64,000 bases of DNA, from IMG/VR virus record IMGVR_UViG_3300037882_003354, positions 1-64,000 of that record; one strand, given 5' to 3'. Below, piece after piece: positions 9,104-29,873 of the stretch. Under the pieces are notes generated by a model that was given only the letters and a program-made list of their open reading frames with translations, was not told the DNA's origin and made no database searches. The position numbers and the translations under genes are program-made. Numbering within the stretch: position 1 is the first letter of the stretch; every line of letters starts with the position of its first letter.

Positions 9104-9555
9104 AAAAGATTTACTACGAAAAAGTTGGCCGCCGGTATGTGCCCGTGGCAGAGTACGACAGCGATTTTTATGACAGTTTTAGACGTGGCAACCACCTGGT
9201 CATGTGCTACCCTGGTGGTACCAGCCGTCGATTTGACGTTGATCCAGACCATGCCGCCATGGTTGCTGCTGGGCGTGTGGCAGAAGATGCAATCAGTCAT
9301 GCATTGATAAAAGCCAGCGAGATGCGGCCGGCCCGAACACCCATCACAGAAGGCCAGCGAAAAGCATGGAAGAAGTTGGCACGGGAATTCGGTGACGATC
9401 TGGCCACATTAAATGTGGCCAGTGCCCGAGACATTGCCGAAGCAGGAGTCCAGGCTTTACAAACCCAGGCAGATGTGCTATTATCTAATCCAGCAGTTCG
9501 TAAAGCCTACGATCACTTTATGTTAATGTGTGAACTTACCAAGGAAAACAAATGA
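9100..9555 (+). CDS. Phage hypothetical protein
   Basis: MKKIYYEKVGRRYVPV; coupled. Confidence 0.7.
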   Translation: MKKIYYEKVGRRYVPVAEYDSDFYDSFRRGNHLVMCYPGGTSRRFDVDPDHAAMVAAGRVAEDAISHALIKASEMRPARTPITEGQRKAWKKLAREFGDDLATLNVASARDIAEAGVQALQTQADVLLSNPAVRKAYDHFMLMCELTKENK

Positions 9556-11914: not shown

Positions 11915-11954
11915 TTTCATATAAATAAACATAGTTAGTAGCAAAGGACGAACT

Positions 11955-12815
11955 ATGTATTATGGATTTATTTATGAATGGACTAATGATCTTAATGGTA
12001 AAAAATATATTGGTTCACACGCAGGAACAATAGATGACGGTTATATCGGTTCGGGAAAAGTTTTCATAAGGGCTATAAAAAAGCATGGCATTGAAAATTT
12101 TACAAGAACCATCATTGAATATGTTGAAGTAAAAGATAGACAATATCTTTTAGAGCGTGAAAAGTTTCATTTAGATAAAGTGAATGCTTATTACTCTAAC
12201 GACTATTACAATGTTGCTAAAGATGTCATAGGTGGCGATACCAAAGCAGGATGGACTAACGAACGCCGTCAAGAGTTTAGCAATCAAATCAAGCAAGTTT
12301 GGGCCAAAAGAACGGAAGAAGAAAAAAAGACATTGTTTGATACCATTCGTAGTAAAACTAAAGAATGGTATCAAACTGAAGAAGGTGACCGATTTAAAGA
12401 AAAGTTGCGTTCCAATGTTCCTCGAATGGTCGAGGGTATCAAAGCCCGCGAGCCAGAAGATAGAAAGCGCAGTGCCCGTTTGGGCAAAGAGCGAATGGGT
12501 GCTGAACGTAGAAAAGAAGTTGCCCGCAAAGGCGTAGAAAATCGTAATCCCGAAACCGAAGCATTGGCAAGACAAAAGGCATTAGAAACCAGAGCAAATT
12601 GGTCAGAAGAAAAGCGTAAAGAAGTTTTCGAGAATAGCAGTAAAGGTAGAAAAGGTAAATGTATTGGTGCCAAAAATGGCAGGGCACGAAAGATTTACGC
12701 TGAGTCTAGAACATTTGACACATTGAAGGATGCCATGCTACAATTGAACATATCTGAATACAAACTGCAAAGTAGATTAAAAGATCCAAACAACAAAGAA
12801 TATTATTATCTATGA
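11955..12815 (+). CDS. Free-standing GIY-YIG (Seg-like) homing endonuclease
   Basis: GFIY...KKYIGSH, YIGSG, YYN; basic C-terminal region; AT-rich. Confidence 0.85.
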   Translation: MYYGFIYEWTNDLNGKKYIGSHAGTIDDGYIGSGKVFIRAIKKHGIENFTRTIIEYVEVKDRQYLLEREKFHLDKVNAYYSNDYYNVAKDVIGGDTKAGWTNERRQEFSNQIKQVWAKRTEEEKKTLFDTIRSKTKEWYQTEEGDRFKEKLRSNVPRMVEGIKAREPEDRKRSARLGKERMGAERRKEVARKGVENRNPETEALARQKALETRANWSEEKRKEVFENSSKGRKGKCIGAKNGRARKIYAESRTFDTLKDAMLQLNISEYKLQSRLKDPNNKEYYYL

Positions 12816-15239: not shown

Positions 15240-15422
15240 TTGAACTCAGTACAACAACGCATGGCAGAATTGATGGAGCCCATCAACCGTCAGATTATGA
15301 TGTGTGATTCCACACAAGAAATGCTCATGATTGCCAGTGCCATGATGGTCAGTGCCAAGGAAATTTTCGATAATCATATTGGTGTGCAGGGTCGTAAACA
15401 AATGTTCAAAGATCTGTCATGA
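15240..15422 (+). CDS. Hypothetical protein
   Basis: LNSVQQRMAELMEPI...; coupled to uvsE; start uncertain. Confidence 0.45.
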   Translation: MNSVQQRMAELMEPINRQIMMCDSTQEMLMIASAMMVSAKEIFDNHIGVQGRKQMFKDLS

Positions 15423-16453
15423 AAAACATCAAGCGTCTGGCTTTTGCCTGCAAGTGGATTGACTCCATGGACCAGGTGGACGCAATCAAGCCCACTGACG
15501 ACTGCAGAAAATACAACACCAGTACCACCACGGTGGCCTGGTTGAATCGGCAGCCACGGGATGTGGCAGTACAAAAACTCTGGGACCTGATGGTGAGCAA
15601 CATTGAGTCTGTTCGACTGTTGGTGGAGCGAGTGGGATTCCTGCAGCCGCACCTGCGCATGGTCCGACTGGGCTCAGATCTACTGCCAGTGTACACACAG
15701 GCAGATTGGTCCTGGTTTTGGAAGCGGCCGGATGTAATCGCATATTGTGAACAGCAGTTTGCCAGGATTGGCGCAATCGCTCGTGATCGTGATGTCAGGC
15801 TGTCCATGCATCCTGGACAATTTGTGGTGCTGGCCAGTGAAACTCCTGCCATTGTGGAACGCAGTATAGAAGAATTTGAGTATCATGCGGACATGGCACG
15901 TTGGATGGGTTTCGGTCGTGAGTTTCAGGACTTCAAGATCAATGTGCACATCTCAGGACGGCTGGGTCCTGCAGGTATTCGCACCGTATATCAACGCCTC
16001 ACTCCCGAGGCACGCAACTGTTTGGCTATTGAAAATGAGGAAATGACCCATGGATTGGATGATTGTCTCGCTATTTCTGATCTGGTGGCTATCACACTGG
16101 ACATACATCATAATTGGATTAAAACAGGAGAGTACATCTCCCCAACCGACCCTAGGATCGATCGTGTTATTCAGTCTTGGCGCGGTCGCCGGCCTACTAT
16201 GCATTATAGTATCAGCCGTGAAAATGTTCTCCTGGATCACAGCACTACTGTGATGCCTGATCTGGCCAGCCTGCTGGCATCAGGACACAACCGTCAGAAA
16301 CTCAGGGCGCACAGTGATACCTATTGGAATACCACGGCAAACGACTGGGCGCTGAGTTTCCTGGATCGATTCGATCTCATGTGTGAAAGTAAATCCAAGA
16401 ATCTTGCCAGCTTTGCACTGGCCAGTCGAGCCCAAGAATTAAACCTTCTTTGA
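15419..16453 (+). CDS. uvsE: UV DNA damage endonuclease (UvsE/UVDE)
   Basis: RLGSDLLP, RLSMHPGQFVVLAS, IENEE, LDIHH, LRAHSD, MCESKSKNLA. Confidence 0.9.
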   Translation: MKNIKRLAFACKWIDSMDQVDAIKPTDDCRKYNTSTTTVAWLNRQPRDVAVQKLWDLMVSNIESVRLLVERVGFLQPHLRMVRLGSDLLPVYTQADWSWFWKRPDVIAYCEQQFARIGAIARDRDVRLSMHPGQFVVLASETPAIVERSIEEFEYHADMARWMGFGREFQDFKINVHISGRLGPAGIRTVYQRLTPEARNCLAIENEEMTHGLDDCLAISDLVAITLDIHHNWIKTGEYISPTDPRIDRVIQSWRGRRPTMHYSISRENVLLDHSTTVMPDLASLLASGHNRQKLRAHSDTYWNTTANDWALSFLDRFDLMCESKSKNLASFALASRAQELNLL

Positions 16454-17669: not shown

Positions 17670-18824
17670 ATGACCTCACCCACTTGGATTACCCCGGCAG
17701 GATTTTTATTCACTGCCACTGAATTATTGATCACCGCCACCACGGTGATGGCCGTGGGCACACCCACATACACTCTGATAAGTGGTGCCCTGCCCCTGGG
17801 TCTGACATTATCCACTGCCGGCGTGATCTCGGGCATACCGTCGGGTGTGTTGGATGTCGGTCGCAGTGAATTCGTCATCCGAGCAGCCAACTCATCGGGC
17901 AAGACTGATCGCACATTTTATGTTGATGTTGCAGGGCCTGATGCACCCATCTGGCTAATACCCGCAGATTATTATCTGCCCGTGGGCATACGTGGCGAAT
18001 CATATGCTCTGAACAAGCAATGGGTAGATTATCAGCTGACCGCCCAGCCGGTGCAGGCCCCAATCAACACTCCGTTGAAGTATTACATAGCCAGGGGCGA
18101 TGGACTATTACCACCAGGTCTGACACTGAGTCAGACCGGCAGAATAACCGGCTACGTCAACGACCAGTTGTCCTACGAAGCTGACATTTCTGTACTGGGT
18201 GGATACGATGACGAGGCTTATGATAAATTTCCCTACGATCATGGTGGCAGTTACCTGGGATCCATCACCGATGCCAGCATGGCAGGCTTGCCCAAGATCT
18301 ATCAATTCATAGTCACTGCAAGTGACGGTGTGGCGCAAGAAAAAAGATTATTCAAGATTGTGGTCACTGACACTATCATTCTGACTTTCAATTTAAAGTC
18401 CATGCCTGAAGAGCTGACAACGTCAACCAGCGTGTTGTACGTACCATTGTCCACCAGCACAATATATGCACCATTACCGCAGTGGATCAATGGCTCAGAC
18501 CTAGGCACTGTGCGCGCTAACAACAACGTCAGCATCGATGTGTCGGCTTATGATCCATATAACTTGGTATTACGAGACAATCAAAATTTTACATCTGTTC
18601 CTGATGTGATCGTGGACATCGTAACACCTCCACCGCCACCGCCACCACCGCCTCCCCCACCGCCTCCCCCACCGCCACCGCCTCCTCCACCGCCTGTGAC
18701 CACGCTGGGTGTCTATGATGTCGGCATTTACGAACCGGGCATATACAATCAGACTGTGGTCTCAAGCGATGTGGTGTTCGAGGCTGGCATATACGAACCA
18801 GGCATCTACTACGATGCTGCATAA
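17670..18824 (+). CDS. Ig-like (He_PIG-type) virion structural protein, N-terminal part, with poly-Pro tail
   Basis: SGALPLGLTLS..GVISG and LPPGLTLSQTGRITG repeats; poly-Pro tract; YEPGIY x2. Confidence 0.75.
   Translation: MTSPTWITPAGFLFTATELLITATTVMAVGTPTYTLISGALPLGLTLSTAGVISGIPSGVLDVGRSEFVIRAANSSGKTDRTFYVDVAGPDAPIWLIPADYYLPVGIRGESYALNKQWVDYQLTAQPVQAPINTPLKYYIARGDGLLPPGLTLSQTGRITGYVNDQLSYEADISVLGGYDDEAYDKFPYDHGGSYLGSITDASMAGLPKIYQFIVTASDGVAQEKRLFKIVVTDTIILTFNLKSMPEELTTSTSVLYVPLSTSTIYAPLPQWINGSDLGTVRANNNVSIDVSAYDPYNLVLRDNQNFTSVPDVIVDIVTPPPPPPPPPPPPPPPPPPPPPPPVTTLGVYDVGIYEPGIYNQTVVSSDVVFEAGIYEPGIYYDAA
18626..18694 (+). repeat. Poly-proline coding tract
   Basis: Over 20 consecutive CCN codons. 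Confidence 0.9.
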
Positions 18825-18827
18825 ATA
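18821..18827 (+). promoter_or_regulatory. T4-like late promoter motif ATAAATA
   Basis: The motif recurs just upstream of many genes: + strand at 11921, 16792, 29901, 43124; - strand at ~40233, 44059, 45006, 61872. Confidence 0.6.
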
Positions 18828-18846
18828 CATAGAATAAGGAAATAAC

Positions 18847-19230
18847 ATGGGATATCTTTCACGAACTGAAAAAGGCAGCGCACTCAACATAAGTGAGCAC
18901 GATACCAATCTGGAATTGCTGGCCAAGGGTCGGGCACTTGATCCTGTGATCATTACTACTAGCACCACGTTAACAGCCACCCTGCATGAAAGTCGAGAAC
19001 TGTTTTGCAACAGTGACGACCCCATCACACTGACCATTGCGCTGGAAGCCAGCGGCGGCCCCACTGCGCTGGGTGCAAGATTTTTTGGTACCAACATCGG
19101 GGTGGGCGAGGTGACATTGCTGGCTGCTGGCACACTAAATGGCGATGCGCTGCTACCAGCCACCATCAGCCAATGGTCACCATTCGAAGCCATTAGAATT
19201 GACCCAGACATTTATGTGCGGAGAGCATGA
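18847..19230 (+). CDS. Tail-fibre adaptor-like protein
   Basis: N-terminal RTEKGSALN.SEHDTNL fibre-anchor-like motif; ITLTI...GEVTL beta domain. Confidence 0.6.
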   Translation: MGYLSRTEKGSALNISEHDTNLELLAKGRALDPVIITTSTTLTATLHESRELFCNSDDPITLTIALEASGGPTALGARFFGTNIGVGEVTLLAAGTLNGDALLPATISQWSPFEAIRIDPDIYVRRA

Positions 19231-19233
19231 TCC

Positions 19234-22200
19234 ATGCGCTCCCTATTTTTTAGAAGATCAGTTGCCCGAGCAAAGCAAGCCCCCACACTGAGGGAAGCGG
19301 CCAGGTTTTTACGCAATGCCACCCTGGCACCCAGCTATGCTGAAATACGCGCCCTGGTCAACAATCCCAGTGGTCTTGAGGCCACACTGACTTCCGGAAC
19401 CAACACTGTGGTGTTGACTGCGGGCACCACCAACGACTTGTATATAGGACAATTGTTGAAGAAAACCAGTGGCACTGGCGAATTTAACACCGACTGTTTC
19501 GTTGTTTTGATCAGTGATGCAAACACCTCCACATTCACAGTGAGTAATCCGCATGTGGCGTCAGGTGACATAGTGTTTAGTGGGGCCAACGATTTTACCA
19601 CTGATCATTTTTCCCGGTGGATAGACGCTCAGATGGCACTGTCATTCCCCAGAATCACCGCCACACAGCCGGCCAGGAGTGGCTGGGACGATGACTTCGT
19701 AGCATGTAGAGTCAATCCACTAGCTTTAGGTAGCACAGATGTTCTGTTGGCATCGGGCAATACCAGTCTGATGCGGGTGGGTGATTATTTATACTATACA
19801 CTTGGACAGGACAATTCCCATCTGGGCAGGTTTGGTGCTGGCGCTCGAGTTGCGTCGATAACTGACAACACCCGATTCACCACCACCGTGCCGCATGCGG
19901 CGTCAGGACAACTTGAGTTTTGGCACGGTAGTGGCATACAACAAACCATACGCATGCGTGAAACTTGCGGTGTCTTGGCACTAAACCGTGGAAACCTGGG
20001 AAGAACACTGAATTGGACCCAGTATCAAGAAGGCAGGAGACTAGCCGAAGCCTATAGATTTTACTTGCACCCTGATAAACTACGCATGCGTGTGATACGT
20101 GCTCTGTCGGAATTGTATTCTGTAGGTCCCACTATTCTTGACGGTGCAGAGGCCGCCAGGGGAACTGATTTTACTGACATGCTGTCAGCATCTGCATTTG
20201 GCAATTACGAAGATTTGATTTACAATGTGACCAAAAGTCTCATCATGGGACGATGGCTCAACCATGAAGGCAACAGGAAGGCCAGTGCGGCCAGCGAACC
20301 TGACGAAAATTATGCGCGAGAAATCATGCAACTGTACACCATTGGTCTATGGGAATTACATCTCAACGGTTCTAGAAAACTGGCCAGTGAGCTATCTCCC
20401 AATGACAGTCGTTATATTGCCCAGCCTGACCCGGGATGGGATGCACAAGTGCCCACCTACGGCTATGATGACATACGAGCCATGGCCAGAATACTCACCG
20501 GATATGTGAGTGCAAGTAGAAATCAAGTTTATTATCTGGGCAACCTTGACGACTCAGTCACGGTGACCATGGCCAGCACCACCACCTCACATGGATTGTT
20601 GCCTGGGGATGGAGTATACATTAGTTTCCCACCTTATGACGATGTCCGTTGGAAGGCCACGTTTACCAACAGCAGCACCACATGCACAGTGATCGATACT
20701 ATAGGTTACGGATCCATCCACGGTTTAAGTGCGAATATGGACATCCTGGATATGGACGCCAATCCTGACCGGGAATATACCATTACCTCAGTCAATACAT
20801 TGACAAATACGTTCACTGTTAACACTGCCAGCAATGTGACTGGTGCCCGCGTCATACAGCAAAAAACACCCCCTAATACGGGGTCGTATCTTCCAACATC
20901 AGCTATATTTTCAGTAGTCAGTACATCCAGCGATCGGGTGTTCACCTTTGATTATTCCACACTGCCAATTAAAGCGTCCAACATAAAAACTAGAATCAAA
21001 GGCCGTGGCGGCTACGCTTATATATCGTCAGAGATCATTGGTGGTATTGATCGGGGCATGATCATAGACCAGGACAGACACGAATATGCGTTGCCCAAGG
21101 TGGCCCTCAAGTGGATCACCAATGATCCGGACCAGATCGAGAATGATGCAGCCCTGGCTGGCTCATTATACATTCCCTCCAGAACAATATCATTGAATGC
21201 CACACTGGCAGCCAACACCAACACCGTTTTACTCAGAGATGTGTCATTCCGCGCCCCTGGTACGACCAACTTCGATGTAAATCGTGTCAACACCACAGAC
21301 GTGTTGTATGTGGGACAGCCACTGTACAAGATTAGTAATACTGGCGTATTTGGCACTGGCACTTTTGTAACCAGTATCAACAGCTCTTACGAATTCACAG
21401 TGAGCGTCAATCATAGAACTTCCGGTAACGTGACATTTACAGGCACCAGTACTGGATTCCAGGCCACGCTGGAGCAGGGTAGCAATACTGTTGTATTGAC
21501 ACCTGGTAAAGGCATACCACAAGGCCTGTATGTGGGGCAGGCCCTGTCCAAGATCAGCGGCACCGGCGTGTTTGGAACAGGCACAGTGGTCAGCTCCATA
21601 ATGATGGGCAGCACCACCACATTCCAGGTGAGTGTGCCGCATGAGACCTCGGGTGTTATATCTTTTCAAGGTCTAAACCCCCGCACCATGGTGGGACTGA
21701 CCGATCCAACACTTCTACAAAATTTAGCCGAACAAGAAGTCAGATGGGCCATGCGAGCACTAACCCGTCATCCCAGCACAGCACCCTATTTTGCCACCCG
21801 AATGATTCGCATGATGGTCACCAGTAATCCGTCTCCAGGCTACATTGCTCGAGTGGCATCTGTGTTTAGGAATGATGGACAGGGCGTGGTGGGCAATCTG
21901 GCAGCCGTGTTCAAGGCCATGTTGCTGGATCAAGAAGCTCGCGCACCAGCATCGAAAAATTTAATTGCCAGGGGTACCGACCCACATGACCTGGGCGCCA
22001 CTCTGGTGGGCGCCACACGCCGCCGCCCAGACCGCCTGGGCGGCAGGCTGGATGGTTATAACAGGCAGCATGGCACTGGCACTAGTCAATACACCCAGGC
22101 CTTTACCTACGCCACCGCGCTAAATCACGGTGTTAATTTTGGTCTGTTCACCACTGGTTCGGTATTTGGTCGGTATCCTGCAATATATTCACCAGCGGGG

Positions 22201-22566
22201 CCAGTTCAAGATGCAGGTAAAATTGCACCAGAATTATTCCTATATGATGAAAATGGCACCAGTCGTATCTACAATAGTTCTGAGGATTTCAATGTTATTA
22301 TAGTAGACATCATGGACCGAGAACAGGAGCATCTGCAATTGGCAACGTCCAATCCTAGTGCTGAGGCCAACATCGATGCTCTGATAGAAAAATATAACAT
22401 TCTGTTCACAGGTGGCACTGCTTCGCCTGCATATATAGCAGCATTGTCCAGTTTTATTAAAAATACCACCAATTTCAGTCGCAGCACGGTGTCCAGCCAA
22501 AAAAAGGCACTTCAAATGATCATGCACAGTCTGTACATCAGCCCTTATTCAGTAATCAGGACCTAA
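19234..22566 (+). CDS. DUF1800 family protein with beta-repeat insertions, no signal peptide
   Basis: EAARFL, DKLRMRV..ALSE, AFGNY, PDENYAREIMQLYTIGLWEL, HPSTAPY, VTSNPSPGYIARVA, GNLAAVFKAMLLD. Confidence 0.88.
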   Translation: MRSLFFRRSVARAKQAPTLREAARFLRNATLAPSYAEIRALVNNPSGLEATLTSGTNTVVLTAGTTNDLYIGQLLKKTSGTGEFNTDCFVVLISDANTSTFTVSNPHVASGDIVFSGANDFTTDHFSRWIDAQMALSFPRITATQPARSGWDDDFVACRVNPLALGSTDVLLASGNTSLMRVGDYLYYTLGQDNSHLGRFGAGARVASITDNTRFTTTVPHAASGQLEFWHGSGIQQTIRMRETCGVLALNRGNLGRTLNWTQYQEGRRLAEAYRFYLHPDKLRMRVIRALSELYSVGPTILDGAEAARGTDFTDMLSASAFGNYEDLIYNVTKSLIMGRWLNHEGNRKASAASEPDENYAREIMQLYTIGLWELHLNGSRKLASELSPNDSRYIAQPDPGWDAQVPTYGYDDIRAMARILTGYVSASRNQVYYLGNLDDSVTVTMASTTTSHGLLPGDGVYISFPPYDDVRWKATFTNSSTTCTVIDTIGYGSIHGLSANMDILDMDANPDREYTITSVNTLTNTFTVNTASNVTGARVIQQKTPPNTGSYLPTSAIFSVVSTSSDRVFTFDYSTLPIKASNIKTRIKGRGGYAYISSEIIGGIDRGMIIDQDRHEYALPKVALKWITNDPDQIENDAALAGSLYIPSRTISLNATLAANTNTVLLRDVSFRAPGTTNFDVNRVNTTDVLYVGQPLYKISNTGVFGTGTFVTSINSSYEFTVSVNHRTSGNVTFTGTSTGFQATLEQGSNTVVLTPGKGIPQGLYVGQALSKISGTGVFGTGTVVSSIMMGSTTTFQVSVPHETSGVISFQGLNPRTMVGLTDPTLLQNLAEQEVRWAMRALTRHPSTAPYFATRMIRMMVTSNPSPGYIARVASVFRNDGQGVVGNLAAVFKAMLLDQEARAPASKNLIARGTDPHDLGATLVGATRRRPDRLGGRLDGYNRQHGTGTSQYTQAFTYATALNHGVNFGLFTTGSVFGRYPAIYSPAGPVQDAGKIAPELFLYDENGTSRIYNSSEDFNVIIVDIMDREQEHLQLATSNPSAEANIDALIEKYNILFTGGTASPAYIAALSSFIKNTTNFSRSTVSSQKKALQMIMHSLYISPYSVIRT

Positions 22567-22570
22567 TCAA

Positions 22571-24373
22571 ATGGCATTATTACCAGCAGAGTTTACGCAA
22601 GCAATAAAAGCAGTTGACAAGCAAAAGTCAAACAACAAACGTGCCCTGGTGATTGTGTACCTGGGTGGTGGGTCGGATAACTTTAATTTTGTCAGCCCCA
22701 CCACTGGAACCAATCGCGTGAATTACGAAGCCGCTCGTGCAGAAACAAATAGAATTCCTGTTGATGCCACAGGCAATACCCAATTGATGCCCGGCTGGCA
22801 AATGCACCCGCAATGTTTCAAGCCGGTGTTAACTGGGGGATCGTACGCTTACCATTCACCCACCACAACAGTTGTCACATCCAACGCAGTGGCTCAGTTG
22901 ACCTCCAATCTTCGATTGGACACTGGGGATCAGGTGTACATTGATTTTAAAACTGTGAATACTGGAACGATTGCCACTAGCGGGGTGTTCACGGCCACGG
23001 TATTAACTTCCAGTACATTCATAATCGATAGATCGGTGGATGTTGATCAAACAGGTACGGCTGACATCACCATAAGAAAGAACACCTTCATGCGTTTGAT
23101 TGACCAGGGCAAGGCAGCAGTAATCATGAATGTGGGACCCTTGATGGAACCCACCAGTCGGGCAAATGTAGGCGGTGCTTATTATGGCCAACCGGCCTCA
23201 GTAAAATTGCCAGTGCAAATCGCCAGTCATTCAGATCAAAATGCTTTATGGCAGACCGGTGTTGCGCAAAACCCACAGTACACCACCGGTTGGGCAGGTC
23301 GGGCCATGGATTTGTTAAACCCAGTGTACAACTCCACGCTGACCAACGGAGAACCCACGGTGCTATATCCGTCATCCATCTCTTTCAGTGGAGTGGGTGT
23401 GGCATTTCGAGCCAATGATCAACACGCCGCTGGCATGTCCCCCACCGGATTGACCGGTCGCACGGGCAAAATTTTATCTAATGTAGCAAACACTGGTACC
23501 ATCAACTCATTTGGTTCCGGCACCCAGGGACAACTGTTGACTAATTTTAACAATGTGTTGTACACTGACACCACCTCATCCAATGCATTGATTAAAGAAT
23601 ATTTGGCGGCTCAACAGCGAAGTGATGTGGCGACCCAGGTGATATCAGCGGTATTGGCTACAACGAATACATTTAATACTGTACCGAGCGACAGATTTAG
23701 CGCAGGTGAGTCGATATATTCTTCATTAAAAACCACTACTCGATTGATCAAGGGCATGTTTGACACAACACCGTCGAGAGATTTACAACAAAACCGTCAG
23801 ATTTTCTTCATGACGCACGGCGGATTTGACCAACACGATGATTTGATTTTTGACCAAGACAAGCGACTGGCGCCACTCATGTCGGCATTAAGACAATTCT
23901 ATGATGCAACTGTGGATTTGGGCGTGCAAGATAATGTCACCCTGCTGGTGTATAGTGAATTCGGCAGAACATTATTGCAGAACGATGATGGAACTGACCA
24001 TGGTTGGGGAGGGCATGTGCTGGTCATGGGTGGCGCGGTGCAAGGTGTCAATGGAGTGGGCGGTCTCCCAGTATTTGGCACTCCCCCCACCATTGGCACT
24101 CGATCTGATCGATGGGGACCAGACTTCACAAATGATTTCCGAGGGCTACTATTACCATCCATGCCCACTGAAACATTGTATTCAACACTAATACAATGGA
24201 TGGGTATACCGGATGGTTGGTATGATTTGAATGGTGATCCCACAGTCAAGGGCGCACAAAATGCTGTCAACCCTGTGGAAGTAGTGTTACCCAACATGCC
24301 TAACTTTGACACGGCAGTGGACGGGTCGGGCAATCCCAGACTGAGAAAAATCACAGGACTCTTGAGTCCCTAA
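22571..24373 (+). CDS. DUF1501 family protein lacking a Tat signal
   Basis: ALVIVYLGGGSD, NVGPL, SHSDQ..WQ, GWAGR, GGFDQH, SEFGRTL, GTDHGWG. Confidence 0.9.
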   Translation: MALLPAEFTQAIKAVDKQKSNNKRALVIVYLGGGSDNFNFVSPTTGTNRVNYEAARAETNRIPVDATGNTQLMPGWQMHPQCFKPVLTGGSYAYHSPTTTVVTSNAVAQLTSNLRLDTGDQVYIDFKTVNTGTIATSGVFTATVLTSSTFIIDRSVDVDQTGTADITIRKNTFMRLIDQGKAAVIMNVGPLMEPTSRANVGGAYYGQPASVKLPVQIASHSDQNALWQTGVAQNPQYTTGWAGRAMDLLNPVYNSTLTNGEPTVLYPSSISFSGVGVAFRANDQHAAGMSPTGLTGRTGKILSNVANTGTINSFGSGTQGQLLTNFNNVLYTDTTSSNALIKEYLAAQQRSDVATQVISAVLATTNTFNTVPSDRFSAGESIYSSLKTTTRLIKGMFDTTPSRDLQQNRQIFFMTHGGFDQHDDLIFDQDKRLAPLMSALRQFYDATVDLGVQDNVTLLVYSEFGRTLLQNDDGTDHGWGGHVLVMGGAVQGVNGVGGLPVFGTPPTIGTRSDRWGPDFTNDFRGLLLPSMPTETLYSTLIQWMGIPDGWYDLNGDPTVKGAQNAVNPVEVVLPNMPNFDTAVDGSGNPRLRKITGLLSP

Positions 24374-24376
24374 ATC

Positions 24377-25729
24377 ATGGCCAATGTGACCACCAATCAG
24401 GGCGTGACTGTGTATACAGTCACAAGTTCCACAGACTCGGCCACCCGTATACCCGACAACCTGGTGTTGGATCCCCTGAAGGGCGTCATACACGGCAACA
24501 TACCCTATCAGCCGGCCTACGTCAAGAATTATGAACTGACGGTCAATGCCACCAAGTACATCACCACCTCGTCAGGCGCACCTCTTTACGTTGTCACCAC
24601 CACCAACACATTTACCCTGGCCATCAAGGGCGAAGTTGAAAGCACCATCGAATGGGTCACTGGCACTGATTTGGGATCCATTGAAACTGGCATCACCAGT
24701 GAACTGGCCGTGGCAGCCCGCCAGATAAATTCAGATTACACCATCAAATATCAGCTGGCCAGTGGCACACTTCCACCGGGGCTGGCCTTGGAAAGAGATG
24801 GCAGTCTGTCCGGCCGTGTGAATACTGGATCCACCACTGGCACCTACACATTCTCCGTCACAGCCAGCGATGTTTACCAGTTGAGTGCCGTACAACGAAC
24901 ATTCACAGTCAATGTCATACAACTAGATAACCGTGTGTACACTGAAGTTTACATGCGCCCGTTTCTGTCCCGACAAAAACGCGATGTCTACAGAGAATTT
25001 ATATCCAACGAGTTTACATTTCCACCCAACATGATGTATCGATATTTTGATGCCAACTTTGGGGTGAGACATGATCTCAGGATCACACTGGAATTTGGCA
25101 TAGAGAAGATAAACTTGCGTGATTATGTGCCAGCACTCAGGGAGAACTTCTATCGTAGGAGGTTTTATTTTGGCGACGTCAAAACGGCGGTGGCCAAGGA
25201 CACACACGGCAGGGTGTTATACGAACTGGTGTATGTGGATGTGGCCGACAGCCTGGTGAACAATTCTGGAGACAGTGTGTCATCCATGATCACATACAAT
25301 CATGGTGGCATGTATTACCCTGGCAGCGTGGCCAACATGAGACAACGATTACAAGGACTGGTACTTCCAGATGATCAATACATTGGTATCAACTACTTTA
25401 ATTTGCCACGATTCATGCAAACACCGCAAGTGGGCAGTTATCGCCCAGTGGAGTACATCAGTGTGATACCGCTTTGTTATGCGCTGCCCGGACAAGCAAG
25501 TAAAATCGTCAGCAGAATTCGACTGAGCAAGTTTGATTTTAAGTTGATAGATTTTGAAGTTGACCGATTGATTGTACAGAGCAGTGCTGATAACAACTCA
25601 GCTAAATATTTGATGTTCGACAGAGAGGATTTAGCCAATTCCATCAGCGACGATTATATTGTATACGGCGCTGACGCCGTGAGTATAAGCACCGTGCAGG
25701 ATGCGGTGCCATTAACCAGAGAAGAATAA
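24377..25729 (+). CDS. Ig-like virion structural protein, C-terminal part
   Basis: LDP..GVIHG.IPYQPA, SGTLPPGLAL..DGSLSG, YPGSVANMR, LCYALPG, FDFKLIDFEVDR. Confidence 0.75.
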   Translation: MANVTTNQGVTVYTVTSSTDSATRIPDNLVLDPLKGVIHGNIPYQPAYVKNYELTVNATKYITTSSGAPLYVVTTTNTFTLAIKGEVESTIEWVTGTDLGSIETGITSELAVAARQINSDYTIKYQLASGTLPPGLALERDGSLSGRVNTGSTTGTYTFSVTASDVYQLSAVQRTFTVNVIQLDNRVYTEVYMRPFLSRQKRDVYREFISNEFTFPPNMMYRYFDANFGVRHDLRITLEFGIEKINLRDYVPALRENFYRRRFYFGDVKTAVAKDTHGRVLYELVYVDVADSLVNNSGDSVSSMITYNHGGMYYPGSVANMRQRLQGLVLPDDQYIGINYFNLPRFMQTPQVGSYRPVEYISVIPLCYALPGQASKIVSRIRLSKFDFKLIDFEVDRLIVQSSADNNSAKYLMFDREDLANSISDDYIVYGADAVSISTVQDAVPLTREE

Positions 25730-27306
25730 TGACACAAATCACCAACTTGCCAGCATTGACCACCATAACCAATGCCATTGTGCTCCCCATTCAGGATCTC
25801 TCCTCACTACCCAACATCACCAAGAAGATGACCATACCACAGCTCAAACAGGCGCTGAGTGGTGCACAGGGATACAGCGGTTCATCAGGATATACAGGTT
25901 CTGCCAGCAATGTAATAGGACCACTAGGGTACACTGGCAGTCGAGGTTACACTGGCAGCACGGGTTATACTGGCAGCACAGGATATGCTGGCAGTCTGGG
26001 ATACACCGGCAGCATAGGTTACACGGGCAGCACGGGTTATACTGGCAGCCGGGGATACGCAGGTAGTCGTGGCAATCTGGGTTATACCGGATCCATAGGC
26101 TATACCGGAAGTTCAGGATATGTGGGATCGCAAGGAGAACCAGGATTAATAGGCGACGTGGGATACGACGGATCCCGGGGTGATCAGGGATACCAGGGCA
26201 GTCGTGGTGACCTGGGCTACACTGGCAGCATGGGATATACCGGATCAATTGGTTATACCGGCAGTCGGGGTGACTCTGGATATGACGGATCCAGGGGTGA
26301 CCTGGGCTACACTGGGTCAATTGGATATACTGGCAGTCAGGGCGATACAGGTTACGCAGGCAGTGCGGGGATTGACGGTGATGATGGTCTACCTGGTGCG
26401 CGCGGTCCGCAGGGGTACACCGGCAGTTATGGTTACACAGGTTCCAGTATAACTGGATATGCTGGCAGCCGTGGATATGCTGGCAGCCGTGGATATGCTG
26501 GCAGCCGTGGATATGCTGGATCAATAGGATATACTGGCAGTAGCGGCTATACTGGCAGTCGGGGATACACTGGATCAACGGGAGCAGGATACACCGGCAG
26601 TCGAGGCCTGGATGGAGCAGCAGTGGCCAGGGGTGACACTGGGTATACCGGCAGCCTGGGCAAATTTATCAGTAGCGACATTGATTGCGGGACACCCTAC
26701 GATGTCAGCAACACCAGAGTCCAACTGCGTCGTGGCACCGCCCAGCAGTGGACCACACTGCCGTCGCCAAATTCAGTTTTACGATCAGGTGAAATCGGAA
26801 TCGAAACCGACACTGGGGCAATCAAGGCTGGCAATGGCACAGCCTCCTGGAATACCTTGCCCTACACCAACAATGCACAGAACAGTCTGGCCACGCCCAG
26901 CAGCACCCGACCACCCACTGTGGACGCTGTGAATGCGGCGTTGGCGGTGCTGGCAACACCGGGTCAACTGTACATGGATTCAAACAACGACATCACTGAA
27001 ATTCGTACTCTTAGTGCATCGGATTTTGACGGGTATATTCGTCGTATCAATAGTGAGTATCCCATCACAGTCACCGTGCCCACAGTGGCTGACATGGGTC
27101 TTGAATCAGATCCAAATATCCTGCGCACCATTGTATTCCTGCACATGGCTCTTGGTGATTTGGAATTTTACGCCAGTGAGGGTGTTACAATCAATGGAGT
27201 GGCTGGTCCCAGTGTGGTCAACCCAGTGGGCGGTGCCGCTGTGGGCTATAAGTTTTATACACTCACACAGATGTCTGTGAATGGTGATGAATGGGCGCTA
27301 TCATGA
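25729..27306 (+). CDS. Collagen-like (GYTGS) tail fibre with an Mtd/hyaluronidase N-terminal-like domain
   Basis: About 260 aa of Gly-X-Y; QLRRGTA..W...GEIGIETDT..K.GNG..WNTLPY. Confidence 0.85.
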   Translation: MTQITNLPALTTITNAIVLPIQDLSSLPNITKKMTIPQLKQALSGAQGYSGSSGYTGSASNVIGPLGYTGSRGYTGSTGYTGSTGYAGSLGYTGSIGYTGSTGYTGSRGYAGSRGNLGYTGSIGYTGSSGYVGSQGEPGLIGDVGYDGSRGDQGYQGSRGDLGYTGSMGYTGSIGYTGSRGDSGYDGSRGDLGYTGSIGYTGSQGDTGYAGSAGIDGDDGLPGARGPQGYTGSYGYTGSSITGYAGSRGYAGSRGYAGSRGYAGSIGYTGSSGYTGSRGYTGSTGAGYTGSRGLDGAAVARGDTGYTGSLGKFISSDIDCGTPYDVSNTRVQLRRGTAQQWTTLPSPNSVLRSGEIGIETDTGAIKAGNGTASWNTLPYTNNAQNSLATPSSTRPPTVDAVNAALAVLATPGQLYMDSNNDITEIRTLSASDFDGYIRRINSEYPITVTVPTVADMGLESDPNILRTIVFLHMALGDLEFYASEGVTINGVAGPSVVNPVGGAAVGYKFYTLTQMSVNGDEWALS

Positions 27307-29873
27307 ATTTAGGTTCAGCAGCAGGGGATTTTACACCCCCCAACGTCATGCAATTTTCATTCACCACCACAGCCAGCTGTTCAACCAGTGCTGGCGTGTA
27401 TGATGCAAATGATCGATTGATTCGAACCCTGTGGAGCGGTGCAGCAGTGGGGGCAGGGCTGGTAACTAGATCCTGGGATGGACTGGATGATCAGGGGGAA
27501 TTTGTATCCAACACCGCCACCTACACCATTAAAGTTTTACAAAATAATGTACAGCATGTATACGACGGCGTGGTGGGCAATAGTTCCTGGCGGGACGACG
27601 ATCATCAAAACATGCACAGCCTTTTCGGCGGTGCCCCCTCATGTCTAGATGCAAATGGCAACCAGGTATTTTACACCGCCGCTTATAATGAAGGCCAAAG
27701 AATATTTGGTAGTTTTGACAGCACCCAATCTCAAATCAATACATACAGAGTTGCCTTCCAGGATTTCCTTACCAGTCCCTATAATTTTGCAGTTGACGAT
27801 CAACGGCTGTATTTTATAACTGCTGGCGGATTAGCTCTGGAAGGACAACTCAGTTACCCGCCGAAAACATTCATTTATGCAGTGGCCCTGGATGTCCCTG
27901 ACAATAATCAATCAAGAACTGGATTCTCATCCGGCACCTACCAGTGCCTGTATTATTATCCAGGACCCGAAACCTGTGCTAATCCTTTTCCCGGAATGAT
28001 CAACCTTGACGAGTATTACCCCACCGATCTTGAATCAGTGGGAACACCTGTGGACGTGCCGTCTGGTATTGCTGTGCAAAAAAATGGAACAGTATTGGCC
28101 GTGGCCTACCCCACTAGGGGAAAAATTCAGTTGTTTGACAAAATTACCGGAGTTGAATTACCCAGCATACTCACTCAATTGATTCCACAGGTATTGATTG
28201 ATCGAGTGTGGGACGGCAGCCGAGTGATACCCTGGATGCCCTATCAATTCCGTATGAATCAACTGGCCATGACCACCGCAGGTGATCTGTGGGTCATCAC
28301 TGGACCCACCACGGTGGCCAAATACACCAACCTCTCCACCACCGCCACCATGGTTACATCGTTTTCCATGAACACGCAGGATCCCGTGGCCATTGCAGTG
28401 GATCCAACCAATGGATCCATCTGGGTGATAGACGGTGGCACCAATCAACAGATTAAGAATTTCAGTGCTGCAGGGGTGCTGCTGAGAACCCTGGGAGTAG
28501 CTGGCGGTTCAATTGGCACCCCCAACTTAAATGATGATCAATTTAATTTCACCGTCCTTCAAACACGTCGAAATGCCGATACCCGTGATACAGAAATCTT
28601 GCTCTATCCCAAGGGCGCCCTAACGGTTGATGCAGGTGGCAATGTGTGGGTGTCAGATCCTGGCAACATACGCACTTTGAAATTTAGAAAGGGCACCTCC
28701 ACCGTCATAGACCGAATAACATATCTTGGTGCAACTTATCATGCTCATGTTGATGCTGGCAATCCCAGCCGAGTATTTTCCAGATTCACAGAGTATGCCG
28801 TGAAGTATGACAAACCATTGACCAATCCTGATTCATGGCGCGTCAGGTTAAATTGGTTGGGGGCTATCCCGCCAGAATGGATAAATCCATTAAGTTATGG
28901 TAGCTTCTATGGTTTTGCCGCTGGGTTTAAAAATGTTGTGACCTTGCGTAATGGTAGAACCTATGCACAATTGGGCTTGGGACAACCCCCGCAAGAACCG
29001 TACGGGAATAATCTTTATGTGATAGTAGAACTCCTGGGTAACGGGACCATCAGGCAGGTGCCTAACATAGTGGGTTCACCACTACGTACCAGTTCCACAG
29101 GCATCGGCCAATATCATCCCACGGCTCTCTTTGAATTACATGATTTGTGTAATGATGGCAGCATTGTATATGCAATAACTGAAGAAAACATCAGGCAAAC
29201 CGTCTACCGGCTACAATTGCAAGGCTTTGACAATTCAAATAACCCTGTATGGAATACCGTCCCCGAGGTAATTGCAACTGCTCCTCTGAATGTTACAGGC
29301 TGGGAGTTGGGGGCGCGAACACAGTTTGGGAATGTTCTTTTTCCAATCACATCCGGTGGTAAAGTGATATTTTATAATGCCATTCCTGACTACGCAGGCA
29401 TGCATCTGGGTGCGGTCAACCTGGGAGACACTGAATGGTCCTGGATGACCAGTCCCACTGGTGAAATCGATTTCAAGGGAACATTCGGTGGACGATTGAC
29501 GAATGGCAGGCCCAATGGTTTAAATTACACCGGCATTTATGCAAAAACATGGGAATCAAGTGTAATTTATGGATATCATGGTGAGGGATATAATAATTCT
29601 CAAGCTAACCAGTTTTACCATTTCCATGAATCAGGACTATTTATAAGTCAGTTTGGCGTGCCCGGCTATGTCGCACCACATGGTCGGAGAACCCCAGGTT
29701 GCATTGGCAATGCATTCAGCTGGAATCTGGCACATGTGGCTGGTTCACTGTATCTGTACAGCAATGACGAAAGCATGTTTGGGGGCATCAGCAGGTGGCG
29801 AATTGACCATCTGAACTCGGTGGTCATGCAAACTGGATCGGGTGGTCTGGGCAGCCGCATTAGCCTGACATAA
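27303..29873 (+). CDS. FlgD-Ig plus NHL/beta-propeller protein, putative receptor-binding or cargo protein
   Basis: SAGVYD..RLIRTLW...WDGLDDQG; PSGIAV, PVAIAVD, VWVSDPGN. Confidence 0.7.
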   Translation: MNLGSAAGDFTPPNVMQFSFTTTASCSTSAGVYDANDRLIRTLWSGAAVGAGLVTRSWDGLDDQGEFVSNTATYTIKVLQNNVQHVYDGVVGNSSWRDDDHQNMHSLFGGAPSCLDANGNQVFYTAAYNEGQRIFGSFDSTQSQINTYRVAFQDFLTSPYNFAVDDQRLYFITAGGLALEGQLSYPPKTFIYAVALDVPDNNQSRTGFSSGTYQCLYYYPGPETCANPFPGMINLDEYYPTDLESVGTPVDVPSGIAVQKNGTVLAVAYPTRGKIQLFDKITGVELPSILTQLIPQVLIDRVWDGSRVIPWMPYQFRMNQLAMTTAGDLWVITGPTTVAKYTNLSTTATMVTSFSMNTQDPVAIAVDPTNGSIWVIDGGTNQQIKNFSAAGVLLRTLGVAGGSIGTPNLNDDQFNFTVLQTRRNADTRDTEILLYPKGALTVDAGGNVWVSDPGNIRTLKFRKGTSTVIDRITYLGATYHAHVDAGNPSRVFSRFTEYAVKYDKPLTNPDSWRVRLNWLGAIPPEWINPLSYGSFYGFAAGFKNVVTLRNGRTYAQLGLGQPPQEPYGNNLYVIVELLGNGTIRQVPNIVGSPLRTSSTGIGQYHPTALFELHDLCNDGSIVYAITEENIRQTVYRLQLQGFDNSNNPVWNTVPEVIATAPLNVTGWELGARTQFGNVLFPITSGGKVIFYNAIPDYAGMHLGAVNLGDTEWSWMTSPTGEIDFKGTFGGRLTNGRPNGLNYTGIYAKTWESSVIYGYHGEGYNNSQANQFYHFHESGLFISQFGVPGYVAPHGRRTPGCIGNAFSWNLAHVAGSLYLYSNDESMFGGISRWRIDHLNSVVMQTGSGGLGSRISLT

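Follow-up and report, generated by a model that had tools for sequence, protein, structure and literature searches.

A huge uncultured phage carries, at the head of its tail-fibre operon, an enlarged version of the bacterial DUF1800-DUF1501 pair, an exported two-protein module of unknown function, in a form that has lost its export signals. The same three-gene cassette recurs among virion genes of many unrelated uncultured phages and is therefore probably a new kind of particle-borne enzyme, a reading that we hold with no more than moderate confidence; the presence of the proteins in particles has not been shown. The window analysed here is a stretch of 64,000 nucleotides (IMG/VR record IMGVR_UViG_3300037882_003354, positions 1 to 64,000) of a 322-kb metagenomic assembly. 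In it the cassette consists of three same-strand ORFs separated by 3-4 nt (Table 1).

Table 1. Positions of the cassette, its inserts and other relevant features in the 64,000-nt window.
Position	Strand	Feature	Observations
17670-18824	+	Ig-like (He_PIG) protein directly upstream of the cassette	Pfam He_PIG E 6e-12; ends in short tandem repeats (GIYEPGIY); a link to the cassette is inferred only
18821-18827	+	ATAAATA motif, possible phage promoter element	Overlaps the stop codon of the upstream gene, 26 nt before the first start codon of the cassette; function not tested
18847-19230	+	Small phage-only protein (127 aa), first gene of the cassette	No Pfam, PHROG, NCBIfam or PDB match; dN/dS 0.14 against locus L003
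19234-22566	+	DUF1800 protein (1110 aa), phage type	PF08811 E 2.8e-45; all-alpha core split and extended by two large inserts; AlphaFold core helical, pLDDT 87-98
19381-19932	+	Insert 1 of DUF1800	Two copies of a ~70-aa repeat (residues 50-119 and 162-233), repeat HMM domain E-values 1e-31 to 1e-33; dN/dS 0.27
20527-21693	+	Insert 2 of DUF1800 (residues 432-820)	Domain with the motif TSHGLLPGDGVY; two more copies of the ~70-aa repeat (residues 656-739 and 744-814), whose matching 58-nt DNA segments are 78% identical; no Pfam match; dN/dS 0.29
22571-24373	+	DUF1501 protein (600 aa), phage type	PF07394 E 2.5e-22; alkaline-phosphatase-superfamily core
22823-23095	+	Insert in DUF1501 (residues 85-175)	Motif (L..GD.VY) like that in DUF1800 insert 2, a weak similarity; pLDDT below 50; dN/dS 0.17
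24377-25729	+	Ig-like (He_PIG) protein (450 aa), 3 nt after DUF1501	He_PIG E 3.6e-12; phrog_13911 'virion structural protein' E 2e-7; kept next to the cassette in the close relatives, 96% and 92% identical in L003 and L005
25729-27306	+	Collagen-repeat tail-fibre protein with an Mtd_N domain	Collagen E 4e-36, Mtd_N E 5e-12; many PHROG tail-fibre families; overlaps the previous gene by 1 nt
27291-29873	+	860-aa protein, last gene of the tightly packed run	Weak FlgD-Ig and NHL-repeat matches; overlaps the previous gene by 16 nt
48012-49382	-	Second, canonical DUF1501 (456 aa) with a Tat signal (NRRQFL)	Pfam E 1.6e-29; 74-77% identical to Burkholderiales MAG proteins and nested among them in the tree
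49391-51571	-	Second, canonical DUF1800 (726 aa) with a Sec signal	Pfam E 6e-92 over the full-length profile; two N-terminal Cys-containing domains joined by PAPAPA linkers; 73-81% identical to Burkholderiales MAG proteins
51584-53754	-	DUF1996 protein (609 aa) and a small fn3 protein, upstream of the canonical pair	DUF1996 protein has a Sec signal and the same N-terminal domain as the second DUF1800
59919-61847		Conventional beta-helix spike candidate	

Our results confirm the observation made in a preliminary description of this region, namely that a DUF1800-DUF1501 pair without export signals is present here, enlarged by inserts and with its core motifs intact. Assignment to the two Pfam families, which that description had put forward as the check its claim would have to survive, was clear: PF08811 scored 155.7 bits against a cut-off of 26.1, being matched in two stretches split by an insert, and PF07394 scored 80 bits against a cut-off of 27. 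The motifs PDENYAREIMQL (about residue 355 of DUF1800) and SHSDQ (219), SEFGR (462) and DHGWG (476) are all present, and the family-invariant residues D36, H220, Q223, D420, H422, D476 and H477 of DUF1501 are kept. Foldseek gave only weak PDB hits for DUF1501 (one at E<=0.001), the top-ranked of which are alkaline-phosphatase-superfamily chains (sulfatase, YejM, LtaS and NPP), while the DUF1800 core has no structural relative in the PDB. No nucleophile was assigned to DUF1501, so we name no chemistry for it.

Neither protein has an export signal. The phage-type DUF1501 starts 24 aa before the first core strand and has no RR motif, in contrast to full-length bacterial hits, of which 104 of 112 have a twin-arginine motif and in which the first core strand lies at a median offset of 47 aa. 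None of 13 viral DUF1501 has a Tat signal. DUF1800 likewise has no hydrophobic leader; proteins of the phage clade share an N-terminus of the form MS..AA.RRK...T..EA.RFL, whereas those outside the clade have Sec or lipoprotein leaders.

The ATAAATA motif, described previously as late-type, occurs in 15 copies in the window against 7.7 expected (0 of 100 shuffles reach 15). Ten of the 15 are intergenic and mostly lie 11-85 nt upstream of a start codon, but one of these precedes a homing endonuclease, so that the late-type designation is plausible but not shown. The enlargement by inserts is real, since DUF1800 residues ~46-235 and ~432-820 and DUF1501 residues ~85-175 are absent from bacterial and from compact phage relatives. 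The claim that the inserts are beta-rich is only weakly supported: AlphaFold models place almost only strands there, but at pLDDT mostly below 50, and the composition is 45-52% T+S+G+N+V. Resemblance of the inserts to beta-barrels of phage depolymerases is not significant (E 0.1-1). The inserts are under purifying selection, with dN/dS no higher than in the cores. The statement that the pair lies among structural genes is half right, because Ig-like, collagen/Mtd_N fibre and NHL proteins follow it and an Ig-like protein lies immediately upstream, yet further upstream are a superoxide dismutase, endonucleases, QueD and a head protease.

The interpretation offered previously, a pair domesticated in this phage as a virion-displayed complex acting on the host surface or matrix, is supported only in part. 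The pair is a genuine, intact phage version of the bacterial module, and it is co-packed with fibre genes, but it is not a one-off domestication. It belongs to a phage-only clade of both proteins, with SH-aLRT support of 99% for DUF1501 and 98-100% for DUF1800, and an AU test does not reject a single clade for all 13 viral DUF1501 (p 0.67). Members of this clade always lack signals and nearly always follow a conserved protein of ~125 aa; an HMM of this small family hits the ORF directly upstream of DUF1800 in 12 distinct phage-type loci and in no bacterial locus. The 127-aa gene is a conserved third member of the cassette and not just a neighbour, which the preliminary description missed, and the cassette is an old phage lineage spread across many phage types. 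The preliminary description also missed that the same window holds a second, canonical pair with Tat and Sec signals (48012-51571, minus strand), recently taken from Burkholderiales, being 74-81% identical to pairs in genomes of that group.

A survey of gene neighbourhoods in other viral contigs, which had been named in advance as a test, places the cassette among virion genes in T4-like, podovirus-like, lambda-like and jumbo contigs, sometimes beside fibre genes and sometimes in the head module. Loci are numbered with the prefix L. In the T4-like L006 the order is tail fibre, small gene, pair, then gp13, gp14, gp15 and gp16; in L013, major capsid protein, cassette and an internal virion protein; in L015, collagen fibre, cassette, large terminase and portal; and in L028, a GDSL tail protein, a 715-aa protein and the cassette. 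In L032 the cassette directly follows the portal gene, in L033 it lies immediately upstream of the S49 prohead protease, decoration protein and major capsid protein, and in L020 it lies between terminase and portal. In L032 and L033 it thus lies in the head module and not with fibres, so surface display is not general, and 'virion-displayed' is only one of several virion-related readings. In the window and L003 it is followed by a He_PIG protein and a collagen fibre. No other window gene is shared with those loci, so the cassette moves or persists as a unit. Gaps between genes range from -19 to +39 nt in nine loci. In L028 the small protein shares its first ~35 residues with the neighbouring 715-aa protein, as fibre anchors do, although in our window its N-terminus matches no other fibre.

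Neither family matched any of 50,697 GenBank phage records, except for one weak partial hit to the canonical DUF1501 in a 6.9-kb unannotated fragment, nor was there a hit to any PHROG (including its structural families), NCBIfam or PADLOC model, and the papers searched describe none in a phage. The only clear viral structural match to the DUF1501 model is a BFVD entry, UniProt A0A6J5M742, automatically named 'DUF1501 domain-containing protein [uncultured Caudovirales phage]' (E 4.4e-13, TM 0.54 normalised to the target), which has 489 aa, 17% identity and no insert; its genomic context was not examined.

The closest known systems are bacterial DUF1800-DUF1501 pairs, such as those in L004, in the Burkholderiales loci L022-L026 and in the window's own second pair, which have both Pfam families in the same order and with the same tight coupling, the same invariant DUF1501 residues and the PDENYARE motif. 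The phage-type pair differs from them in its lack of Tat and Sec signals, its conserved extra small gene upstream, its large inserts in both proteins, its virion-gene rather than housekeeping or EPS neighbours, and its separate, well-supported clade. The closest bacterial pair lies in an EPS cluster in L024, although this context rests on one or two bacterial loci, and the literature links the pair to bacterial chitin-synthase operons and to Tat export (PMC5122149). In Planctomycete and Verrucomicrobia modules (PMC3542564), also of unknown function, DUF1501 always works beside a large, modular partner that in Planctomycetes sometimes carries carbohydrate-binding domains; there the partner is a PSCyt/PSD1 protein instead of DUF1800, the modules are exported and no phage context has been reported. 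Phage tailspike and tail-fibre depolymerases (beta-helix lyases and hydrolases, endosialidases, SGNH esterases) are likewise encoded among fibre genes, made without signals and carried out of the cell on the particle to act on surface glycans, and the small inserted beta-barrel domains of endosialidases gave the best, though non-significant, local matches to the DUF1800 inserts. However, the cassette has no beta-helix or beta-propeller and no recognised N-terminal anchor, and a two-protein alkaline-phosphatase-superfamily plus all-alpha module is unlike any virion enzyme known to us or met in these searches. Head-module cargo and internal virion proteins (MuF-type cargo after the portal gene, T7-type internal proteins) resemble the cassette in position in L032, L033, L020 and L013, but show no sequence similarity to it, and in the window and several other loci the neighbours are fibres.

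Other explanations appear less likely. The head-module positions just mentioned, together with the abutting neck genes gp13 and gp14 in L006, would suit proteins packed inside the capsid, or at the portal or neck, and delivered with the DNA into the periplasm of the next host, where they would act in the same compartment as their exported bacterial relatives; loss of the signals fits delivery by ejection. We consider this unlikely, since ejection needs unfolding whereas the Tat dependence of the bacterial enzyme points to folding, and possibly cofactor loading, before transport, and since a 1110-aa protein with five or more extra domains is an unlikely ejection substrate. Furthermore, the neighbours in the window, L003, L015 and L028 are fibre or tail genes, and no T4-type LxE capsid-targeting motif is visible at the N-termini of the L006 proteins, as inferred by reading their sequences. 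It is equally unlikely, in our view, that the complex is a soluble late enzyme released at lysis to degrade or modify matrix or envelope polymers around the burst, helping progeny to escape or to reach new cells, with the small protein as a chaperone or third subunit. Signal loss, the evidence for late co-expression, the absence of a recognisable virion-anchor domain and the separate spike candidate in this phage are compatible with such a role, but a position inside head or tail gene blocks in many unrelated phages is unusual for free enzymes, extra domains were gained in both subunits, and the L028 small protein shares its N-terminus with a large neighbour.

A cytoplasmic takeover enzyme, hydrolysing a phosphate-ester-bearing intermediate of envelope-polymer synthesis or some other cytoplasmic substrate, is more doubtful still. 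Signal loss by itself predicts a cytoplasmic location, the catalytic-type residues are kept, and the window carries other metabolic genes (ribonucleotide reductase, QueD and superoxide dismutase). Against this, in the loci examined the cassette is never found among early or metabolic genes but always in virion-gene regions, and the exported host-type pair that the phage already carries next to its reductase genes shows what an auxiliary copy looks like, which is very different. Structural co-option without catalysis, with the fold as a mere scaffold or binding module on the particle, is suggested by the large non-enzymatic inserts and by a repeat family specific to these proteins; it is improbable, because every family-invariant residue of DUF1501 and the conserved DUF1800 motifs are retained across the whole phage clade at 30-45% identity, which would not be expected if catalysis had been given up. 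Finally, the families are otherwise bacterial and the contig is a metagenomic assembly, which would suit a chimera, raised beforehand as grounds for dismissal, or bacterial contamination of the viral contig. This is close to refuted: the order small gene, DUF1800, DUF1501, He_PIG, collagen fibre occurs in independent assemblies from other samples (L003, L005) at 87-96% and 72-92% protein identity, GC is 0.48-0.52, like the window as a whole at 0.47, the genes are packed 3-4 nt from phage fibre genes, and the same cassette appears in many other viral contigs.

Our analysis establishes family membership, the loss of both signals, a phage-only clade, the conserved third gene, tight packing with virion genes in several phage types, retention of the metal-site residues and purifying selection on the inserts. 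Late expression, complex formation, attachment to the particle, catalysis and the substrate are inferences, action on the host surface has not been shown, presence in the particle, catalysis and substrate are untested, and none of the three proteins has been placed in a particle, or on its surface, by proteomic or structural evidence. With these reservations, we read the phage-type DUF1501 protein as an alkaline-phosphatase-superfamily metallo-enzyme with its conserved residues intact, and the explanation we favour is that an old lineage of the pair, which in bacteria is exported through Tat (DUF1501) and Sec (DUF1800) and in at least some genomes sits in exopolysaccharide gene clusters, lost both signals, gained the small partner and settled among virion genes, acquiring in the jumbo and T4-like branches inserts in both large proteins that are modelled, at low confidence, as strand-rich. 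In this view the proteins would be made late in the cytoplasm together with fibre proteins, would fold there as Tat substrates do, and would leave the cell as part of the particle, with the small protein as the likely link to the virion. At the next host, they would act on a phosphate- or sulphate-ester-bearing envelope or matrix polymer.

The sequence examined belongs to IMG/VR contig IMGVR_UViG_3300037882_003354, which is 322,512 bp long, the size of a jumbo phage, and of which the first 64 kb were read here. Several lines point to a betaproteobacterial host, namely a full-length Betaproteobacteria-type tmRNA (Rfam RF01850) and a DUF1800-DUF1501 pair on the minus strand that is 74-81% identical to pairs in freshwater Burkholderiales genomes. 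Features of the window, and of the other loci to which we refer, are collected in the table.

Coordinates of the cassette, of the second pair and of other features in the window and in comparison loci (window positions unless a locus is named)
Position	Strand	Feature	Observation
11402-12815, 15419-16453 and 36085-37047		QueD-like 6-pyruvoyl-tetrahydropterin synthase and several homing or HNH endonuclease genes	QueD hints at 7-deazaguanine DNA modification; the endonuclease genes are scattered among the phage genes
16803-17372	+	Phage-encoded Fe/Mn superoxide dismutase	Sod_Fe_C E 2e-22; preceded by an ATAAATA motif
18700-18824; L006 ~9500-9562; L013 ~7700-7745; L014 ~7780-7835		C-terminal ends of the proteins encoded just upstream of the small cassette gene, in four lineages	Short tandem repeats GIYEPGIY.., DTFVSDTFVADVFV, YADNYADNYA and PLMVDGHPLMVDGFPL; may be a docking tail
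18821-18827		ATAAATA motif	
18847-19230	+	Small cassette protein	127 aa
19228-19230	+	TGA stop of the small gene	
19234-22566	+	DUF1800 protein	1110 aa
21305-21362 and 21527-21584		Matching 58-nt segments of the third and fourth copies of the ~70-aa repeat inside DUF1800	78% identical, which indicates a recent tandem duplication
22571-24373	+	DUF1501 protein	600 aa
25729-27306	+	Collagen-repeat fibre carrying an Mtd_N domain	Mtd_N: major tropism determinant of Bordetella phage BPP-1
45271-45642	-	Phage-encoded tmRNA	Rfam beta_tmRNA 139.5 bits, E 1e-43; also matches the permuted tmRNA model; ARAGORN tag peptide AANDDAYLMAA
45390-46148		252-aa ORF overlapping the tmRNA	Probably spurious
48012-53754	-	Second, canonical DUF1996-DUF1800-DUF1501 cluster, plus a small fn3 protein	All with Tat or Sec signals
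48012-49382	-	Canonical DUF1501	456 aa; Tat motif NRRQFL
49391-51571	-	Canonical DUF1800	726 aa; Sec signal; Pfam E 6e-92
51584-53413	-	DUF1996 protein	609 aa; Sec signal
53413-53754	-	Small fn3 protein	
49391-49700 and 53100-53413 region	-	N-termini of the 726-aa and 609-aa proteins	Shared ~75-aa Cys-containing domain (ETFRLAGMTF.STPCAVEG..CT), twice in each protein, joined by PAPAPA linkers; also at the N-terminus of the Burkholderiales DUF1800 proteins
59919-61847	-	642-aa protein with pectate-lyase-like beta-helix matches and a fibre-type N-terminus	ATAAATA 25 nt upstream; conventional tailspike or depolymerase candidate, far from the fibre operon
L019 5052-9797		Two ~750-aa proteins with similar N-terminal regions, followed by a signal-less DUF1501	Viral contig; the second ~750-aa protein is the DUF1800 protein; no small cassette gene detected
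L024 788-13858		Canonical pair embedded in an exopolysaccharide cluster	Burkholderiales MAG
L028 2788-2900 and 4956-5060		First ~35 residues of the small cassette protein and N-terminus of the neighbouring 715-aa protein	43% identity, as in alternative fibres that share an anchor

The observation made in the preliminary description, that a DUF1800-DUF1501 pair lacks export signals and keeps its core motifs, is borne out. Three plus-strand ORFs are packed 3-4 nt apart, and the core motifs read in the two large proteins (SHSDQ, SEFGR and DHGWG among them) are all present. Failure of the Pfam profiles had been named beforehand as grounds for abandoning the assignment, and both profiles match well above their gathering scores: PF08811 (DUF1800) with 155.7 bits against 26.1 (E 2.8e-45), in two stretches either side of the second insert, and PF07394 (DUF1501) with 80 bits against 27 (E 2.5e-22) over residues 24-503. 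The ATAAATA motif that had been called late-type is about twice as frequent in the window as in shuffles (15 copies against 7.7), and ten of the 15 copies are intergenic, mostly 11-85 nt upstream of a start codon; one precedes a homing endonuclease, so that calling it a late promoter is reasonable but untested, and terminator and sigma-70 promoter scans were uninformative. The run of genes from 18847 to 29873 has gaps of +4 to -16 nt and continues beyond the pair through a He_PIG Ig-like protein, which also gives a weak match to a PHROG virion structural family, a collagen/Mtd_N tail fibre and an NHL-repeat protein, and a second collagen fibre follows after another ATAAATA. Upstream the picture is mixed, with an Ig-like protein, then a superoxide dismutase, endonucleases, QueD and a head maturation protease.

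Because the 127-aa and 1110-aa ORFs share a frame, read-through of the intervening TGA was considered, but it was set aside since an ATG follows 3 nt later and a GGAG lies upstream, and since the homologous genes are in different frames or overlap in three other phage loci (L013, L015 and L033). A diversity-generating retroelement was likewise considered because of the Mtd_N domain, but no template/variable repeat pair was found in 17-34 kb of the window, only collagen-codon repeats.

The loss of export signals stands in contrast to the bacterial members of both families. Of 112 full-length bacterial DUF1501 hits, 104 have a twin-arginine motif in the first 40 residues, with the first core strand starting at a median of residue 47, and the other eight look like truncated gene calls. 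The window protein starts 24 residues before that strand and has no such motif, and the same holds for all 13 DUF1501 proteins from viral-type loci. Bacterial DUF1800 proteins have Sec or lipoprotein leaders, whereas the phage-type ones share a short basic N-terminus (MS..AA.RRK...T..EA.RFL) and have no hydrophobic leader; these judgements come from inspection of motifs and a simple count of hydrophobic runs, not from a dedicated signal predictor. Members outside the phage-type clade have leaders or lipoboxes.

Our results indicate an old phage lineage rather than a domestication in this one phage. Close relatives of both proteins at 70-90% identity occur with the same gene order in independent assemblies, L003 from a Logan run and L005 from ENA, which argues against a chimeric assembly, a possibility named at the outset as one that would overturn the reading; GC content, 0.48-0.52 for the cassette against 0.47 for the window, argues against it as well. 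L003 and L005, like the T4-like L006, come from freshwater sites. The exhaustive search with DUF1800 found a graded series of relatives at about 45% identity, whose contigs are phage, and a scan of IMG/VR with DUF1501 patterns gave ten further loci, while a scan of viral contigs with the small-protein alignment recovered only two loci because the degenerate patterns were too narrow; no metagenome-wide scan was made. In maximum-likelihood trees the window's DUF1501 lies in a clade of eight signal-less viral sequences (99% SH-aLRT), and its DUF1800 lies in a clade of eight (98%) nested in a clade of 22 (100%), the larger of which holds every viral-type sequence except two long branches. The unlabelled metagenomic members of that clade have the phage-type N-terminus, and those that we looked up lie on phage-like contigs. 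These are quick-search trees in which the bacterial rows are the nearest hits to the window protein, so the clade is well supported but not exhaustively tested. An AU test does not reject a single origin for all 13 viral DUF1501 (p 0.67).

The 127-aa protein, described beforehand as fibre-adaptor-like, is a third member of the cassette. It has no match in Pfam, PHROGs, NCBIfam or the PDB, and its structure was not predicted. Homologues with 29-44% identity and ten invariant residues sit directly upstream of DUF1800 in the other phage-type loci, and an HMM of the family finds it in 12 distinct loci, but in none of the bacterial loci (L004 and L022-L026) and in none of the four most divergent viral loci. 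The cassette genes are separated by -19 to +39 nt in nine loci, and no other window gene is shared with these loci, so the three genes persist or move as a unit.

A survey of gene neighbourhoods in viral sequences had been proposed as a check on the virion reading, and in the loci surveyed the cassette is always among virion genes. In L006, a T4-like contig of 59 kb, a Peptidase_S74 fibre, a fibre-assembly-like protein and a 1263-aa tail fibre precede the cassette, which is followed by T4 gp13, gp14, two gp15 and gp16. In the podovirus-like L013 the order is portal, major head protein and a 293-aa protein, then the cassette, with an internal virion protein further on, and in L015 it is a collagen-like fibre, the cassette, then large terminase and portal. 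In L020 terminase and a fibre-like protein are followed by the pair, then by portal, major head protein and an internal virion protein. The cassette follows a GDSL-type tail protein and a 715-aa protein in L028, and terminase and a Mu-type portal in L032, whereas in the lambda-like L033 it comes before S49 prohead protease, decoration protein, major capsid protein E and, later, the tape measure. It therefore lies on the fibre side in some lineages and inside the head block in others, and since GC content of these contigs runs from 0.37 to 0.65, the hosts are diverse.

Both large proteins keep the conserved residues of their families. All invariant columns of a 70-sequence DUF1800 alignment are present in the window protein, including the PDENYARE.MQL block (P356-L367, with N359, R362, E363 and Q366) and S864, P866 and Y870. 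DUF1501 keeps every invariant column of a 42-sequence alignment, that is the putative metal-site residues D36, H220, Q223, D420, H422, D476 and H477 in the GGxD, SHxDQ, GGFDxH and DHGWG motifs. Its AlphaFold model (mean pLDDT 71.9, core mostly 80-95) gives only weak Foldseek hits in the PDB, one of them at E<=0.001 (3.7e-4, TM about 0.2), and the top-ranked are alkaline-phosphatase-superfamily chains: sulfatases, YejM/PbgA, LtaS and NPP. The arrangement of Asp and His residues resembles the metal sites of that superfamily, but no nucleophile was assigned, because S219 is invariant and T195 is not, and the fold comparison thus neither secures nor excludes membership. The DUF1800 core is modelled confidently as all-alpha (pLDDT 87-98). 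Foldseek of that model against the PDB gave no hit at E<=0.001, and single-sequence and profile searches of PDB sequences found no relative of DUF1800, DUF1501 or the small protein.

Compared with compact phage versions (about 560-600 and 430-480 aa) and with bacterial ones, the window proteins carry extra segments, at residues 46-235 and 432-820 of DUF1800 and residues 85-175 of DUF1501. Compact trios occur in L010 and L013, with the small protein at about 130-150 aa and the two large ones at about 600 and 480 aa. DUF1800 holds four copies of a ~70-aa repeat, of which one copy is detectable in the T4-like relatives and none elsewhere in the window. A second small domain with the motif HGL..GD.VY occurs in DUF1800 insert 2 and in the DUF1501 inserts, although the pairwise similarity is short (E 2e-5 with the L006 insert and 0.05 within the window). 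The inserts, described beforehand as beta-rich, are rich in T, S, G, N and V (45-52%) and are modelled almost entirely as strands, but at low confidence; local beta-barrel matches to phage proteins are not significant, and Pfam searches at E up to 10 with the inserts alone gave only sub-threshold TOBE_2 and Lsm_C hints. They evolve under purifying selection, with dN/dS against L003 of 0.17-0.29, compared with 0.32-0.39 for the cores.

The preliminary description did not mention the second pair, which is of a different origin. Its two DUF genes are 73-81% identical to Burkholderiales pairs and nest among them in both trees with 100% support, yet their GC is 0.49, against 0.57 in the bacterial copies, so they are settled phage genes. 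They sit a few kb from the ribonucleotide reductase genes, are only about 30% identical to the fibre-operon pair, and look like a recently acquired auxiliary copy, having high identity to host genes, host-type targeting signals and a location outside virion modules. The pair at 19234-24373 has none of these properties, being at most 36% (DUF1501) and about 40% (DUF1800) identical to relatives outside the phage-type clade, devoid of signals and placed beside fibre genes. The phage therefore holds a recent host-type exported copy and an old phage-type copy. In the Burkholderiales genome fragment L024, the pair closest to the second pair lies in an exopolysaccharide cluster with an epimerase, ManC, Ugd, an EpsI-like DUF3485, a Wzx-type flippase and three glycosyltransferases (WecG, GT2 and GT4), which is suggestive but rests on one or two loci.

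No function is assigned to either family in the papers that we found, which note the operon pairing, the Tat motif and co-transfer with bacterial chitin synthase genes (PMC5122149), and modular partners in Planctomycetes that sometimes carry carbohydrate-binding domains (PMC3542564). Full-text searches found no paper that describes these families in a phage, the one co-occurrence being a weak CDD hit of a 61-aa Pseudomonas phage ORF. Megablast of the region and tblastn of both phage-type proteins matched none of 50,697 GenBank phage records, and the canonical DUF1501 gave one weak partial hit, in an unannotated 6.9-kb fragment. PHROGs and NCBIfam gave nothing for the three cassette proteins, PADLOC gave no hits for any of the seven proteins tested, which does not support a defence or counter-defence role, and BFVD holds a single automatically named DUF1501 from an uncultured phage. 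Since the proteins belong to known families, and carrying enzymes on particles is a known strategy, we do not regard the cassette as categorically new, but as a phage-type version that differs from the bacterial pair in its lost signals, its small third gene and its place among virion genes.

The interpretation offered beforehand, a virion-displayed two-protein enzyme or binding complex acting on the host surface or matrix, is supported only in part. It is well supported that this is a phage-adapted, signal-less, three-gene version of the module, expressed with virion genes. That the products are part of the particle is about as likely as not, even when the head-internal variant, by itself unlikely, is included; only gene neighbourhood supports it, as there are no proteomic data and no PHROG hit to the cassette proteins, and no isolate exists. 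In favour of an external location in this phage are the fibre operon, the Ig-like neighbours and the added strand-rich domains, and a Tat substrate is expected to fold before it leaves the cytoplasm, which suits assembly onto a particle better than ejection through a tail. However, the head-module position in L032 and L033 keeps the internal-cargo reading in play, and we cannot rule out a free late enzyme or a cytoplasmic role. A conventional tailspike depolymerase is not indicated, since the Pfam and AlphaFold results point to an all-alpha DUF1800 core and a DUF1501 resembling the alkaline-phosphatase type, with no beta-helix found. Whereas the family membership, the missing signals, the phage clade and the conserved third gene rest on the sequences themselves, a substrate in the form of an envelope or matrix polymer bearing phosphate or sulphate esters is inference, based on the fold and the few bacterial contexts.

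A more far-reaching reading, which we consider doubtful though of high interest if true, is that the cassette would be a previously unrecognised class of particle-borne enzyme complex, made of an alkaline-phosphatase-superfamily enzyme, its all-alpha DUF1800 partner and a small adaptor, spread across jumbo, T4-like, podovirus-like and lambda-like phages, in which carriage on the virion has replaced Tat/Sec export. This jumbo phage would then attack the same envelope or matrix polymer from two sides, the particle-borne complex acting from outside at adsorption and the freshly acquired exported host-type pair acting from the periplasm during infection, and together they would give the first experimental handle on what DUF1800 and DUF1501 do.

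DUF1800 and DUF1501 are large, widespread families, the exhaustive search having found 4622 DUF1800 relatives among clusters at 50% identity. A phage lineage that has stripped off the export signals, added a small partner and placed the pair among virion genes gives a natural experiment on where the enzyme has to be in order to work, compact and signal-free versions that should be easy to express, and a biological read-out (adsorption, halo formation, host range) for the substrate. If the complex is on the particle, it adds a new enzyme class to the set of phage receptor-destroying or matrix-degrading activities, which is currently dominated by beta-helix lyases and hydrolases, sialidases and esterases. 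The presence of an exported host-type pair and a phage-type pair in one genome is also a clear example of the same module being acquired twice for different uses.
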